A DNA stretch of 63,081 nt, counting the filler, from Ministeria vibrans ATCC 50519 (Eukaryota > Protista > Filasterea), in the NCBI GenBank assembly GCA_943704425.1. It is 9 parts of 9 records of this genome, joined end to end, with 100 filler letters (N's around TTAATTAATTAA, not from the genome) between each part and the next. Parts side by side here need not be neighbours in the genome. Positions count along the whole stretch, not along the records: positions 27,788 to 35,342 come from CALSCP010000556.1; 8 more parts are not named here. The stretch is one strand, 5' to 3'. Within the stretch, counting starts at the first letter, position 1; every line of letters starts with the position of its first letter. The position numbers and the translations under genes are program-made. Under the pieces are notes generated by a model that did no database searches, was not told the origin of the DNA, and saw nothing but the letters and a program-made list of their open reading frames with translations. Shown here one piece after another: positions 27,788 through 35,447 of this stretch.

Positions 27788-28099
27788 GTGGATCGTGAAC
27801 GTGATCGTGAACGTGATCGTGAACGTGACCGTCATCGCACTTCCCACCACGATGAGGGTCGTCGCAGCAGTCGCGACGACTCCACCACTGCTACAGCATC
27901 ATCAGGGCGCTCCTCTTCACGCGACCACCGTCACCCCTCCTTCTCTCGTTCTCGCGACCGAGACAGAGACCGTGACAGAGAGAGCGGTCGCGGTCGCGAC
28001 CACTACCATCACCATCCTTCTTCGTCGTCCTCCTCCTCCTCATCGGCTGTTGTAGTCAGTGTCGTTGAGCATCCGCGAGACCGAGACTCCCGTCGCTGA
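27788..28099 (+). CDS. RD/RS-rich C-terminal fragment of an unidentified protein
   Basis: Open RD/RE/RS-rich frame from the contig start to a TGA. Confidence 0.45.
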   Translation: MDRERDRERDRERDRHRTSHHDEGRRSSRDDSTTATASSGRSSSRDHRHPSFSRSRDRDRDRDRESGRGRDHYHHHPSSSSSSSSSAVVVSVVEHPRDRDSRR

Positions 28100-28404
28100 A
28101 AAAAAAATGGGACGACAGACGTATTTGTATCATAATTATTATTTCTATACACACTACAAATAGCACACAAAATGCAATGGTATAACTATGAACGCTCTCC
28201 GCACTCTTTAAATAATTGTTCGACTTTCGCAGTGAAGCAAGAAATTTTAGCAAAAGCAAAGATAAAACATTCGCTTTGATAGTACTGTTATTGATAGGCA
28301 GTGTTGTTGGCTTGTATCAATGAAAGTGTTTGATTAAAAAAAAATTTGATAATACACTTTTTTTCTTTACTGGCGACTCATTCAGCTGTCTTGACACACA
28401 CTTT

Positions 28405-29472
28405 TCAGCTCTCCTTTTCGACAAACTTATTGCCATAGAACCAAAACAGACGAACCTAAACACACAATTCTCAGACTTTATTGTTTAGATTGTTGTGTTA
28501 TTCCTACCTTGTGCATAAAGGGTGTCTTGGGGATGACACAGAGGAGCAAGGCAACCGTGTTGAGGGCAAACGAGAAGTAATCGTCATAGTCGACCGTCGG
28601 CAATGCAATCATGTAACTAAAACACCATCACATAGTAAGCACAGCACACATGCACGAATCGCACACAAACTCTCTCACTCTCGTACACAAACTCTCTCAC
28701 TCTCGTACACACACACATGCAATAATCTCACGCCCTCACTCACACACACACTAAGAAAGTTGAACGTTGCACAAAACATGCTTACATGAGAACAGGCACA
28801 ATGGTGTAAAATTTCCTTGTGATGGTCAACTGTGTCTCGGCGTCGAGCTGTTCCCACTGCGTCAACAACCTCCATCGTCCCTAAACAGAGACACACAAAC
28901 CCCAGACGTCTTAGCAAAAGGTGTTTTTCTCCAATTACGATCATCTCATCCTTGCGCTGCTCACCTGACCGTCGTCCCCAGTATCGCCAAAGGGTGTCCC
29001 TCGCATGTGGTGGAAGAGAATGTACGTCAACTGGACGGAAGACAGAGGAAAAAAAAAAATGAGGAAATGGAAAAAATTCCGACCCCAAATCCCGTGCTTT
29101 TTATTATCAATAGGAACACGGCGACATCGGCATGACGACCCTATGGACCATTCAGCGACGACGACAAGGAAAAATCAAGCGAGGCCTTTGCGGCGGATGG
29201 CGTAGTGGCACCAAAACGAACGGACGCGATTGGGGAGAAAAAAAAAAAGCAAAAAAGGTCATCCAAGAGGGACACTTACCATGGAATGCGCGACGCCCAC
29301 GAAGGTCCATTGGGCCCCTGCTTCGTAGATGGGGGCGAGGGCTCCGGCGAGGATGCGGAAGAGGGCAATAATGCCAAAGTAGGCAGCCCACGTCACTCGA
29401 CTGTGCAGCCACTGCTCGTTGGGGTTCTCGGGCGTGTCGATATCGTCGATGGGGGTGTCGCTCTCCGACATG
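28405..29472 (-). CDS. ORMDL: ORMDL-family sphingolipid synthesis regulator
   Basis: NPNEQWLHSRVTW, GTPF, WEQLD..TQLTITRKFYTIVP and IPKTPFMHKVRLF motifs over spliced exons. Confidence 0.88.
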
Positions 29473-29729
29473 GTCTCAAAAGTATAGCGCAGCGACAAAA
29501 CAAACTGGCAAGCAAGAGAGATGAAGTGAGACAACACATTGGTTGATCACTTCCCCTCCCAAAGATCACTAAATTTATTTTTTCAGTTTCACTTTGACAG
29601 TGAGAGGTACTCTGTCGATCTGTGTCTAGTGGTACAGTAGAATTAGACAGACCCGCTCACTCAATTCGCCCTGACTCTTGGAATTTTCACTTGACCAGTT
29701 GATCAACTGTGATTATTTCGTCAACTGTC

Positions 29730-30297
29730 ATGTCTGGTGCGGAGGTAACAGCACTCCAGCTCGCTCATCCATTCCCCTCCCTTCCCGCTTTGTCTTCGTT
29801 TTCTTGCAGCTTCGCGATGCGGCTGCAAAGGGCTATGTCGACGATGTGCGCAAACTGATTGACTCGCGTCTCGGTACGCCACTGTGACCTTCGCCGCCAT
29901 GATTGCGCCAACTCCTTGTGTTTCACTTGATGCAGATTTGTGTTATGAGACGGATGAGGGCGGCGAGAACGCTCTGCACTTTGCGGCGCGACTGGGAGCC
30001 GTCGTGACAATGCGTGTGCTCATCGAGGGACAGCCAACGCCCGAGACACGCCGTGCCTACGTTAACTCTGTAAACATTGGCGGGTGGACGGCATTGATGC
30101 ACGCGTCGTGCCGAGGACACGCTGATGTTGTTGCATACCTACTCAACGAGTGCGGCGCTGATCAGAAATTGAAGAACAACTTGGGGCGTACTGCCTTGGA
30201 CATTGCGCGTGAAGGAAACCACACGCCAGTGGTGCGACTGCTAAAACCGAAACGGGGAGTCTTTGGGACGCTGACTGTGGGTAGGTGGATGAAGTGA
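29730..30297 (+). CDS. Small ankyrin-repeat protein (three exons)
   Basis: LRDAAAKG, GENALHFAARLG, GWTALMHASCRGH and GRTALDIA motifs. Confidence 0.85.
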
Positions 30298-30763
30298 CTT
30301 TTGGGCGGATCAACCAAAGAAAGCGGTTGCATTAATTGTGCACTTTTCACTCTTGTGAGACGCGACGGCTTTTTACGAACGAAGAGCGAGCAGCGTGCCT
30401 TCAGCATGTAATCAGTGCCTACTTTGCCTGATCATGGGGGCCATGCTCAATTAAATGTGTGAAACTTTCCATCGTATTGATAAATGTATCATGAAAAGAG
30501 AAAAAAATCAATGTATCAAAAAAAATTTAATATTATAAAAGATTAGGCAAGTATTCTACAAAGTACAAGAGTATTGAGGTCAGTCGAGTCAGTCGAGTGT
30601 CGACTGTTGAGAGGAAACAGAGACAGTAGTATTATAGGAAATAAAGAGAGAGAGAGAGAGAAAATACACAAATATATAAGAAAGTCAAATGAAAAAATAT
30701 ATAAAAATAATAGTAATAATTATTATTATTGTTATGTGAAACCAAAAAAAAAAAAAAAGAAAG

Positions 30764-30883
30764 TGCGGTTGCCCAGAATCGAACTGAGAATGTCACGGAA
30801 CTGTTAATGTTTCATGAACCACAACGTGAAGTTTGTTATTTTTTCGAGTTGGAAAGAAAGGATAACCATTTCACCACAACCGC
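30764..30883 (-). tRNA. tRNA-His(GUG) with two introns (23/24: 30833-30860; 37/38: 30799-30818)
   Basis: Removing 28+20 nt gives a 72-nt cloverleaf: acceptor GCGGTTG/CAACCGC+A, D stem GTGA/TCAC, anticodon stem TCACG/CGTGA with GTG, T arm CTCAG-TTCGATT-CTGGG, then a poly-T trailer. Confidence 0.9.
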
Positions 30884-30975
30884 CGAACACTATTACCGAA
30901 AAAGCGCTATAAAATATTATTATAATAAAAATAGCAAAAAAAAAACAATTAATAAGAACCAAAAAAAAAGTAAAG

Positions 30976-31095
30976 TGCGGTTGCCCAGAATCGAACTGAG
31001 AATGTCACGGAACTGTTAATGTTTCATGAACCACAACGTGAAGTTTGTTATTTCTTCGAGTTGGAAAGAAAGGATAACCATTTCACCACAACCGC
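30976..31095 (-). tRNA. tRNA-His(GUG) second copy with two introns (31045-31072; 31011-31030)
   Basis: Tandem copy 212 bp away; it differs by one base inside the D-arm intron. Confidence 0.9.
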
Positions 31096-31315
31096 CGAAC
31101 ACTATCACCGAAAAAGCGCTATATAACCCTATTTTAAATTGAACCATCGAAAATATCTCCAAACTTGTCTTTGTGCAGTATATATTCTGTACAGTACTCT
31201 AATAGTAGTGTGAGGATGTTGTTACGTTGTGTTTTTCTTGTTGTGGAGATTAATTTTCAACAAAATCAATTTGAATCGATCAAGAGCAAATTTTTGCTAA
31301 AACTTTTGATTCGTC

Positions 31316-31968
31316 ATGGAGTACGCCTCGCTCATTGCCGGTGATGGCGATGACGAAGACATGAGCATGCTGTTGCAACGAGACGAGAGTTGCGAGACGC
31401 TGCCAACGCCGCCGGGGAAGTCAGCGAAAACCAAGTCGGCGCAAGGATCGTCGTCGTCCGCCGAGAAGCTGTCGAGTTCCGCCGCGAGCGCAGTCGCTAG
31501 CCCTGTGCAAGTCGATGTGTTCTCCGACCCCGACGCCGATGACAGTGACGAAGAGGTGCGTCATTGCTTAAAACTGTGTTTTTTCCTGACTTGGTTATGT
31601 TTCTCTGCTCGTCCAGCGCTCACGACGAGACACAACGCGCAAAGGAAAGCGAAGGAAGGAGCCCAAGTCGGCGGCTGCGCCCAAAGGAGACTCGACGCGA
31701 GAGCCGGTGGCCAAGAAGGACTCGAAAGGCACAAAAGAAACAAAGGAAAAGAAGAAGGTGCGAAAAGGCAGGCTTTGAATGTAGTCATTGATCGCTCTCT
31801 ATTCGGCTGCAGGGACACAAACGAGATGCTTCGGACACAAAGAAGGAGCTAGTCAAGCCCGTTCGGTAAACACTGAGCAGCCCAGATGAATGATTTCTTA
31901 CTTGTTTACCTTCTCTTTCCAGTGATGCACACGAACAGTATGCCGATCGCTACAGTGTATTAAATTGT

Positions 31969-32061
<93 letters not shown>

Positions 32062-34261
32062 AGCGCTGACTCTGTCGTGTGTATGTAGACACCAAAGCGG
32101 GAGNNNNNNNNNNCCCCCCCCCTAACTAATTTTCTACGGCAATTAGGTTCCGTTTCTGACGGTAATGGAACGGAGTGCGTACGTTGATCCGATTTCCGAG
32201 TGGCGCATCAACGCACCGTCAATTCTTGTCAAGTCGATTGTGTCCATTGAACTGGATGGTACGTTTGAGATTTTGTGTGTGAGTGTGTGTGCTTTTAAAG
32301 TGAACACTGAGTGTTGTGTATGTTTGTGTAGCAATGGAAGAAGAAGGATTGTATCGTGTGTCCGGGTCGCACGGACGAATCAAAGAACTTAAAGCAGCTT
32401 TTGACAAAGGTAGAGACTAGTATTTTTTTTGAGATGGAGCGACCGATTAATTGATGGGGACGATTTTGTCGTGCGTGTGTGTTATAGGAGAGGATGTGTC
32501 ATTGGTGAATGAAAATGACAAAAATACCATTTCGGGACTGTTGAAACTGTGGCTCAGAGAACTGCCCGACACGATCATTCCACCAGACGCACTGACGATT
32601 CTCGAAGATATTTGCGGTAATTTCAAGTTTTTTTTTTGTTTTGTTTTTTTTCTATTTTCTATTTGTGAGTGTTGTTAATTAGCGTGACTGAGTCAATCAC
32701 TGATCCGTCTCTTAAATTCGGGCACTTAATGTACAATATTCACGAAAAAAAAATATTATCATTATTATTAAATTTTTCGTGTTTATTCATTTTTCGAATC
32801 TACATCAATGATCTAATTGAGTCACTGACTCCGCTTGCGAAACCCCCCTGACTCGCTTCCCCATTAGATTTTTTTCTTTTTGCCCTTTCTTTTCTTTTTT
32901 GCCCTTTCTTTTCTTTTTTGCCCTTTCTTTTCTTTTTTTGTCCTTTCTTTTCTTTTTCCGCCTCTTACTCCTCTCATTGATTTAGGGTCCGACACAAACC
33001 CTTCTGATCTCAAGCGAGTCCTCAAGCACTCTATCCCCGCAACACACTACATGACAGTCGCTCTGCTATTCATCCATCTCCATCGCGTCATCGAGTGCAC
33101 TGCAGTCAACCTTATGACGCCCGCCAACCTTGCTATTGTCTTCTCGCCCACTTTGCGTGTCAGTCAGGGCATTGTTCATGCGCTTGTCATTCATGCGGAC
33201 ACCGTCTTTGAGTCTTGTAAGACACTTTGACAAAGAGGAAAAATGTGAATGTGATTGACTATCCATGCCTTGCTTTTATTTATTTTCGTGTTTTGATCCA
33301 CTCGTAGAGTGTGTGTGTATGTATGTGTGGGTGTGTTATGTGATGTTGGTTTGGTGTTGCGTTGTCAATTTTTATTTGAAATGAGGTTATACTGTTGTGT
33401 GTCTAGGTTTTGTCTCACAATCAATCGTGAGTTTGAACTGTTTCTCTCTCTATTTTTTGCGTGTTCTCGTCGTGTATCTTTATGCTCGCTCTCACTTTTT
33501 CTCTTCCTCTTTCTCTTTTTTCTCACTCAACGTCTTTCTTTCTTTCTCCTTTTTCTTCTCTCTCTCTGTCACACAGATATGTACGACACGTACAACGCAC
33601 TTGTGAGGGATGCACGGGATATATTCATGATTGACAGTTTGAACACAGTCGAAGAACTCCGAGAAATGCACACGCGAATCCTATGCGATGATGAAGAGAT
33701 GAAGGCAACCAATTTGAAGCTTGTGGAGCGACTGGTGCGCGCACGACGTACTCGGAAGGAGCTTGAGGACCATTTGGAAGCGGCGGTATTTGATTTGATG
33801 CATACAAGTGTGGATGAGATGCTGGCAGTGTCGTCGAGTGATGAAGAAGAAGAGGAAGAGAAAGAAGAGTTGGAGGTTGTGAGTGAAGAGGGAACGGAGG
33901 AGAAGGGAGAAGAGTTGCCACAGGCGACACAGGGGAAGAGTCAGGATGAGCTGCGGATGGAGCGGATTGTCAAGCGGGAGAGTCGTGTGATGTTGGTCGC
34001 AGAGCGAGACAAACAACGCACTGTTGAAGAGGTAAAGAAGAAACGTTGTGAAACGCTGTATTGACTGTTATGTGCCCGTTGATTTTATAGCTTACGAAGG
34101 ACATTTTGGATGTGAGTTGTGAACGAGAGGTGTTCTGCGAAGAGCAGGAGCGACTTGCCCTTGAGATGCACACGCGCACATACGCACTGCATGTGCAGCG
34201 ACGCAGAGCAGAAAGAGCGCATGCGGAGCTGCTGTTACTTCGCGAGTGTGTTCATACCTAA
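31316..34261 (+). CDS. RalBP1/RLIP76-like RhoGAP (acidic and Lys-rich N-terminus, RhoGAP, coiled coil)
   Basis: KPFGVPF..VMERS, EGLYRVSG, LLKLWLRELP and NLAIVFSPTL motifs, then coiled-coil exons. The model spans a small N gap at 32104. Confidence 0.75.
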
Positions 34262-34414
34262 GCGAGAAACCGACAGAAAAGTGTGTGTGTGTGTGGCTGG
34301 CTGGCTGAGAGTGACTGACTATTTTCTGGTGTGTTCCCCGCCAAAATAATGTACTTATTATTATTACGCAATACTATGAAGATCTCAAAGAAAGATATCG
34401 GAATAATACTCTAT

Positions 34415-35282
34415 TTATTCAAACGGCTTTTTTGGAACGAGAGGCACGACCCTTACGAGTCGCAGCGGGACTGGAAGAGACAGGGCTGCTCGAAGTGTCC
34501 TCATTGTCATTGGAAGAAGAGGAGGTAGACGTAGGAGACGAGGAGAGGGGGCGCTTGAGGAGACGCTTCTTGACGGTGGTGGTGGTGGTGGTGACGACGC
34601 GACGGGCGGTTGCTGTTGTCTCGTTTACCGATTGGTTCGTTGTTGCTGCGATTGTACTTTTGCTCAGGCGCTCCTGTTCACGCTGTGCGTCACGGGCACG
34701 GTAGATTTCGGCAGTGAAGGGCCTAAAAATATATCGTATGAAAAGGTATAATAATTAGAAAAATAAACTATGTATGTGATTGTGTTGTATGATTATGTAC
34801 CCTTCGAAGCTTTCGGCAATCTGATAGAAAATGTAGACTGTCGCAGTGACGACAAGACCGGCGGGGCTTGCGTGCATGATGGAGTGGCCAAGGAAGCACA
34901 GAGTGCTTCCAGTGTACATGGGATGTTCGCAAATGCTAATGACAAATAATGATTATGATCCATCATCAACACACTAACAAACAACACACACACACACACT
35001 CTCTCTCTCTCTTTCATACACACACAGACTAAAAGTCTTACTTGAAAGGAGTTCCAGTAACGCGGTGGTCCATGAGAATGCCGCAGTAGTCGCCGAGGTA
35101 CGTTCCGGCGATGCCCAGCGCAAACATGGACGTAAGGACGAGCCACGCGCCAAAGAGGAAGACCATTGCGCCGCACGTCCAGAAGAAGGGCGAGTCGAAC
35201 GCCGCATACTTGCTCTGCGACTTGAGAACCTCGTTGAACAGGTAGTCCCGCGTCAGGCCCAGCGTGAAGATGGTGATCGCTA
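34415..35282 (-). CDS. PEMT: Phospholipid N-methyltransferase (PEMT/OPI3), 5'-truncated
   Basis: ALGIAGTYLGDYCGILM, HPMYTGSTL, SPAGL and EGPFTAEIY motifs. Confidence 0.9.
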
Positions 35283-35447
35283 AACACTCAAAAATGCGTA
35301 AGACGATCATTCTCTCTCTTTTTTTTTTTTTTTTTCTCTGCCNNNNNNNNNNNNNNNNNNNNNNNNNNNNNNNNNNNNNNNNNNNNTTAATTAATTAANN
35401 NNNNNNNNNNNNNNNNNNNNNNNNNNNNNNNNNNNNNNNNNNGAGAG

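Follow-up and report, generated by a model that had tools for sequence, protein, structure and literature searches.

Tandem tRNA-His genes of a protist with a putative bulge-helix-bulge intron inside the D stem and a second intron at 37/38

Can a nuclear tRNA gene be interrupted inside its D stem and still give rise to a working tRNA? The question is raised by two units of 120 nt each that lie head-to-tail on the minus strand within positions 30764-31095 of the window (the whole 63,081-nt stretch of DNA analysed). The two copies, A and B, are offset by 212 nt, share the same layout shifted by that distance (Table 1), and are identical at 119 of 120 bases, with a single A/G difference. We read them as working tandem nuclear tRNA-His(GTG) genes, probably transcribed by Pol III, each with two protein-spliced introns, one of 28 nt at position 23/24 and one of 20 nt at 37/38, and we put the probability of this reading at roughly 0.6. 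It is favoured by the register of the splice-site motif, by undamaged exons and by intact Pol III signals.

On the raw DNA of 27788-35342, ARAGORN called no tRNA and the Rfam library gave no tRNA match, even at E≤1. A scan of the same piece that ignores introns, and looks for a T arm with a matching acceptor stem, found these two units only. Excisions were made by script from the coordinates, and ARAGORN was then rerun. With the 28-nt insert cut out, ARAGORN -i called tRNA-His(gtg) with a 20-nt intron at position 38; with the 20-nt insert alone cut out it reported nothing; with both cut out it called a flawless 72-nt cloverleaf, tRNA-His(gtg). An uninterrupted tRNA therefore needs both excisions, since the removal of neither insert alone suffices. 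Readings with a single intron or another anticodon were rejected, as no tRNA-like fold came from any of them.

The product spliced in silico has seven acceptor pairs, a 4-bp D stem (GTGA/TCAC), a 5-bp anticodon stem, the anticodon GTG, a 4-nt variable region and a 5-bp T stem with the loop TTCGATT. All 21 stem pairs are intact, with zero mismatches and a single G-U pair; also retained are U8, A14, the A15/U48 pair, G18G19, U33, G37, G53, T54-C56, A58, C61 and A73. The features of a tRNA-His are all present, namely the anticodon GUG, the eukaryotic-type A73, the conserved tertiary bases and a G at -1; CCA is not encoded in either copy. The D-stem strand TCAC is composed of TC from the end of exon 1 (positions 22-23) and AC from the start of exon 2 (24-25), and a one-base shift of either cut destroys it, so the placement of the insert at 23/24 is correct. 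An earlier note on this DNA had proposed a tandem tRNA-His pair that standard scanners may miss, that requires excisions at 23/24 and 37/38, and whose D stem GTGA/TCAC is restored by cutting after the second bulge base. All of this stands: both units lie on the minus strand where the note had placed them, ARAGORN and Rfam are silent on the raw DNA, the stepwise-excised sequence behaves in ARAGORN as expected, and shifting the cut breaks TCAC.

Table 1. Coordinates of the candidate tRNA-His genes, their putative introns and control elements, and the neighbouring genes.
Feature	Position in window	Strand	Evidence or remark
tRNA-His(GTG) copy A, precursor body 120 nt (positions 1-73 + two inserts)	30883->30764 (30764-30883)	-	in-silico double excision, ARAGORN
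Copy A exon 1, tRNA positions 1-23	30861-30883	-	
Copy A A box, in exon 1	30866-30876	-	
Copy A putative ectopic 28-nt intron, 23/24, 3' strand of D stem	30833-30860	-	inner stem C-A mismatch; BHB register in 0.0005 of shuffles
Copy A exon 2, positions 24-37, anticodon GTG included	30819-30832	-	
Copy A putative 20-nt intron, canonical position 37/38	30799-30818	-	
Copy A exon 3, positions 38-73; A73 at 30764	30764-30798	-	
Copy A B box, in exon 3	30775-30785	-	
Copy A trailer, T3 + T15 runs, Pol III terminator-like	30744-30763	-	
Copy A upstream block, 28 nt, TATA at start, G at -1	30884-30911	-	27/28 shared with copy B
tRNA-His(GTG) copy B, precursor body 120 nt	31095->30976 (30976-31095)	-	in-silico double excision, ARAGORN
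Copy B exon 1, positions 1-23	31073-31095	-	
Copy B A box, in exon 1	31078-31088	-	
Copy B putative ectopic 28-nt intron, 23/24	31045-31072	-	perfect 6-bp inner stem; BHB register in 0.0002 of shuffles
Copy B exon 2, positions 24-37	31031-31044	-	
Copy B putative 20-nt intron, 37/38	31011-31030	-	
Copy B exon 3, positions 38-73	30976-31010	-	
Copy B B box, in exon 3	30987-30997	-	
Copy B trailer, T3 + T9 runs, Pol III terminator-like	30961-30975	-	
Copy B upstream block, 28 nt, TATA-like start, G at -1	31096-31123	-	
ORMDL-family exon	29262-29471	-	Pfam E 5e-7
Ankyrin-repeat gene, poly(A) tail from 30525	29808-30525	+	contigs
RhoGAP gene, start near 31303	31303-32617	+	contigs
PEMT exon	35041-35310	-	Pfam E 1e-9

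Both inserts can be drawn as bulge-helix-bulge (BHB) motifs. In the D insert, the six bases that end exon 1 form, with the intron, a helix GTTA/TAAC of four Watson-Crick pairs, flanked by 3-nt bulges TC^C (5') and AA^A (3'), where the caret marks the cut. The inner stem TTTCTT/AAGAAA carries a 9-nt loop and is a perfect 6 bp in copy B, with 3+2 bp and a C-A mismatch in copy A. At 37/38, TTGT/ACAG with one G-U pair is the helix, GG^T and TT^C are the bulges, the anticodon stem serves as outer helix, and the inner stem is of 4 bp with one mismatch. For both inserts, the cuts dictated by the cloverleaf fall after the second bulge base, which is the established rule for BHB substrates. The rule is given as cleavage after the second base of each bulge (PMC10485636). 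The geometry is as the earlier note had described it, with both inserts BHB-like and the inner stem of the second copy perfect. In the D insert a single G:C pair closes the outer side of the 3' bulge, so the motif is relaxed relative to the strict hBHBh' form.

Such motifs are easily found, and an unconditional BHB scan returned about 19 loose ones per kb per strand, against about 13 in shuffled sequence. Since loose BHB-like motifs are so common in the DNA scanned, their mere presence was rejected as evidence, and only the coincidence of register counts. We fixed the splice sites by the cloverleaf and shuffled the intron letters in 10,000 trials, scoring a shuffle when it gave a 4/4 central helix with an abutting inner helix at least as long as that observed, capped at 4 bp (3 bp for copy A). 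The D insert register recurred in 0.0002 (copy B) and 0.0005 (copy A) of shuffles; for the 37/38 insert the fraction was 0.025-0.06, a weak BHB signal.

The foremost alternative is that the pair are pseudogenes. A hairpin-forming sequence of 28 nt would have inserted into the D stem of a tRNA-His gene with a 37/38 intron, the gene would then have been duplicated or gene-converted, functional tRNA-His would be encoded elsewhere, and the transcripts of these copies would be degraded. We consider this unlikely, while regarding it as a serious competitor. Insertions in the D or T arm of eukaryotic tRNA genes are mostly taken for pseudogenes and usually affect one defective copy among many synonyms (PMC4090602), which weakens the reading as working genes, and the abundance of loose BHB-like motifs adds to the case for pseudogenes. 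Against it, the BHB register falls at exactly the cuts that rebuild the D stem, a match seen in 0.0002-0.0005 of shuffles, the insert is present in both copies, and the exons are without decay, with 21 of 21 pairs and all conserved bases intact.

The Pol III signals bear on the same choice. By inspection, an A box, TGGTGAAATGG, occupies positions 8-19 and a B box, AGTTCGATTCT, positions 52-62, so the ectopic insert at 23/24 lies just 3' of the A box, as had been claimed. No T run of four or more occurs inside the 120 nt, in surroundings of 34% G+C, and T15 (copy A) or T9 (copy B) follows within a few bases downstream. Each unit thus has the A box, B box, T-run terminator and freedom from internal T4 of a type-2 Pol III gene. 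These intact boxes, terminators and upstream block, together with the lack of an internal T run, argue against pseudogenes. The homology of the copies is sharply bounded, from -28 (the TATA start) to the terminator, with 27/28 matches in the upstream block and 119/120 in the gene; beyond the shared block the flanks are unalignable and match only at the background level for AT-rich DNA. Such bounds would fit a conserved or homogenised Pol III unit. Selection is not proven by the likeness of the copies: their introns match as well as their exons do, which is what recent copying rather than selection predicts and a point in favour of pseudogenes. The near-identity, introns included, may reflect a recent duplication or gene conversion.

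RNAfold predicts a minimum for the primary transcript in which positions 10-14 pair with 26-30 and neither the D arm nor the anticodon stem is formed; for the whole precursor, the BHB-containing fold lies 9-12 kcal/mol above it. A minimum-energy fold without the BHB favours pseudogenes, and, like the single G:C outer helix of the D motif and the mismatch in copy A, it weakens the reading as working genes. We treat it as a caveat and not a refutation, since the energy model penalises an AU-rich BHB with two 3-nt bulges. The 10-14/26-30 pairing is possible because TCAC is present twice. On the minus strand, TCAC is assembled across the D intron and also serves as the 5' strand of the anticodon stem; the pairing segments are 31086-31082 with 31042-31038 in copy B and 30874-30870 with 30830-30826 in copy A. 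This duplication may, if the model holds, enforce the order in which the introns are removed. In-silico excision of the D intron leaves a 92-nt intermediate whose predicted energy minimum is an entire cloverleaf that carries the second intron in its anticodon loop; so folded, the intermediate is an ordinary substrate of the eukaryotic endonuclease. From the predicted cloverleaf we infer that the D intron would leave first, by motif recognition, and the 37/38 intron second.

Processing of these putative genes would then run as follows. The ectopic intron and the end of exon 1 would fold into a relaxed BHB with a 4-bp GTTA/TAAC helix, 3-nt bulges and an inner hairpin, and the tRNA splicing endonuclease would cut the intron via this local motif, two bases into each bulge. 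A tRNA ligase would join TC to AC to give the D-stem strand TCAC. The outcome would be an ordinary eukaryotic pre-tRNA, from which the 37/38 intron would be excised in the usual way, with CCA addition and G-1 maturation coming last.

Comparison with an intact homologue addresses the D-stem halves directly. The 21 nt at the 3' end of the tRNA, used as query in a metagenome scan, found one locus, L002, an intronless tRNA-His of another eukaryote, whose neighbours include a kinesin-like ORF. The spliced product and the L002 tRNA-His are identical at 55 of 72 bases; of the 21 stem pairs, 14 are unchanged, six differ in both bases and one in a single base, and pairing is kept in all of them. Half of the six compensatory pairs (3/6) lie in the D stem that the insert splits. 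To judge by these paired changes, the comparison shows the exons beside the insert to be the two halves of a true D-stem strand, as would fit a working gene or a very recent pseudogene alike. The metagenome, genome and viral collections scanned gave no second intron-bearing homologue and no further copy from this organism; viral contigs scanned with the 5' exon gave no match. In the prokaryotic-genome scan with the same 21 nt, L003 443-463, an exact match, was rejected as a chance hit in a coding region of a Lentisphaeria MAG from sheep colon, with no tRNA. All three tRNA-His genes have a G at -1 (30884 and 31096, minus strand; L002 4505) together with A73. Thg1 is the enzyme that normally supplies G-1 in eukaryotes, and a G-1 present in the gene itself, opposite A73, may be fortuitous or may have a part in 5' processing.

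A different enzyme has also to be considered. On this alternative the genes are functional and a modified, archaeal-like endonuclease, symmetric and guided by the motif only, cuts both introns via BHB, in which case many other tRNA genes with ectopic introns would be expected. Both introns can be drawn in BHB register. The D arm, which human TSEN contacts via TSEN54, TSEN2 and TSEN34 (PMC10485636), is disrupted in the primary transcript, and in Cyanidioschyzon merolae ectopic introns accompany an unusual set of endonuclease subunits (PMC3728597). Set against these points are the single tRNA species in 27788-35342, the weak BHB signal at 37/38 (0.025-0.06) and the predicted fold of the post-D-intron intermediate as a normal eukaryotic substrate. 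Conventional eukaryotic enzymes, moreover, already cut BHB substrates, the eukaryotic splicing endonuclease having been reported to cleave those of archaeal type (PMC4090602, citing Fabbri 1998 and Di Segni 2005). Because the eukaryotic enzyme cuts BHB and the intermediate is predicted to fold as an ordinary pre-tRNA, an archaeal-style splicing system is not required, and we think one improbable here. Removal of both introns by a eukaryotic enzyme faces a difficulty of its own: the four-subunit endonuclease of Amorphea (animals, fungi, amoebozoans) is said to cut at 37/38 only (PMC10485636, a 2023 review), which weakens the reading as working genes.

An origin of the inserts in faulty assembly or sequencing, or in a chimeric join, is highly improbable, for although the copies form a short tandem repeat prone to mishandling by assemblers, they agree at 119/120 bases, and a low-depth contig from an independent study spans 30825-31066 unspliced, with 2 differing letters, and carries both D inserts with the copy-specific base and the spacer.

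The pair sits between two genes, in a gap of 780 nt, and the genome is nuclear and dense in introns. Over 29800-32800, contigs of four runs have the same sequence as the window but lack six GT..AG introns of 55-78 nt, and the ankyrin and RhoGAP genes are expressed in several runs. No joint of a tRNA intron occurs in the contigs of these four runs, which are mostly mRNA and cannot show a 72-nt tRNA. Runs labelled 'DNA?' also carry the spliced form of the neighbours, so they contain RNA or cDNA. The many GT-AG introns of 55-78 nt and the long intergenic DNA exclude a nucleomorph and argue against a red alga, and both origins were rejected on these grounds. Elsewhere in 27788-35342, weak SCARNA7 matches in Rfam (E 0.4-0.8) at 31929-32013 and 33219-33338 fall on (GT)n microsatellites and are almost certainly artefacts of these repeats; a (GA)n tract lies at about 30648-30662, and long A runs occur. 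On the plus strand, 27788-28099 is an open frame with Arg/Asp/Glu/Ser-rich repeats (RD/RE/RS type), cut by the edge of the piece, and is possibly the tail of a splicing-factor-like protein.

To which lineage does this genome belong? The best named relatives of the PEMT exon are the fungi Wickerhamomyces, Savitreella, Geosiphon and Diutina and the ichthyosporean Sphaerothecum, at 50-59% identity. The ankyrin exon had a near-identical metagenome scaffold as its sole match. A word-indexed protein search with the ORMDL exon gave no candidate, so the host lineage seems poorly sampled. The earlier note had spoken of a holozoan-like protist; the PEMT exon weakly suggests an opisthokont-like host, and nothing finer than that is borne out, though an ichthyosporean such as Sphaeroforma would be a conceivable guess.

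What would follow if the pair are working genes? On a tentative reading, with the odds somewhat against it, all tRNA-His of this opisthokont-related and possibly holozoan protist would come from genes with a D-stem BHB intron. If true, its endonuclease would process an ectopic intron in vivo with no need to read the mature tRNA domain, and the locus would offer a natural substrate for asking whether a eukaryotic endonuclease can recognise the motif alone. The case would be the first of its kind in Amorphea, and further hidden tRNA genes with several interruptions would be expected in the genome; an essential tRNA could then escape standard annotation. Eukaryotic scanner settings are considered more trustworthy in Amorphea on account of the 37/38-only cleavage described there (PMC10485636). 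A working D-stem intron in an opisthokont-like host would, if true, challenge both that rule and the reliability of tRNA annotation in the group (PMC10485636). Our searches of the literature, full text included, brought up no account of ectopic tRNA introns in any opisthokont, ichthyosporeans among them. Were the copies pseudogenes, the tRNA-His pair would be a mere curiosity.

With ordinary eukaryotic tRNA introns the genes share the 20-nt intron at 37/38, an anticodon that pairs with the intron, and a 3' splice site in a 3-nt bulge beside the anticodon stem. They differ in having a second, ectopic intron in the same gene, and to our knowledge tRNA-His is not among the usual intron-bearing families of yeast or human. 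Archaeal multi-intron tRNA genes (Thermoproteales and others, cut by EndA) resemble them in the 4-bp helix and 3-nt bulges, in cuts two bases into each bulge, in D-arm introns, and in a motif independent of tRNA position. Unlike archaeal genes, those described here have neighbours with spliceosomal GT-AG introns and polyadenylated mRNAs, and they combine A73 with no encoded CCA and a T-run terminator; unlike the archaeal motif, the D-stem motif nearly lacks an outer helix. Among eukaryotic nuclear tRNA genes, we know of ectopic and multiple introns documented by experiment in red algae only, and otherwise in nucleomorphs. In the nucleomorph of Guillardia theta, tRNA genes carry insertions in both D and T arms that are taken out at the RNA level (Kawach et al. 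2005, in PMC4090602 and PMC3728597), which is likewise a case of ectopic insertions in tRNA arms in a eukaryotic compartment. Most of those insertions, unlike the present ones, cannot form a BHB, some are 3 nt only, and the genome is tiny and compact.

The red algae offer the closest parallels. In Chondrus crispus, nuclear tRNA introns validated by RT-PCR lie at 20/21 in the D loop and 58/59 in the T loop (bioRxiv 10.1101/2021.12.21.473619, PlantRNA 2.0; PMC13578239). There, as here, a canonical and an ectopic intron can occupy one gene (tRNA-Tyr and elongator tRNA-Met), the introns are BHB-like, and the genes fail standard scanning, tRNAscan-SE having taken those of Chondrus for pseudogenes. 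Beyond the difference in lineage, the Chondrus sites are always 20/21 or 58/59, in loops, whereas the site here, 23/24, is inside the D stem. C. merolae has 42 tRNA introns in 27 genes, 5/42 of them in the D stem (PMC3728597). Its genes share with the present pair their nuclear, Pol III-type nature, more than one intron at D-stem and 37/38 sites, a BHB or relaxed BHB at exon-intron junctions, and a history of being missed by standard scanners. Removal is ordered as well, the anticodon-arm motif always being processed last in the three C. merolae tRNAs examined (PMC3728597); here the same order, anticodon arm last, is predicted from the folds. C. merolae is, however, an extremophilic red alga with few introns; most of its tRNA genes are disrupted, some are permuted, and their splicing was shown by experiment. 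The present host is intron-dense and apparently opisthokont-like, tRNA-His is the only tRNA in view, no permutation is seen, and splicing is a prediction. In kind, the pair would match the red-algal examples; the new elements would be the lineage and the position at 23/24.
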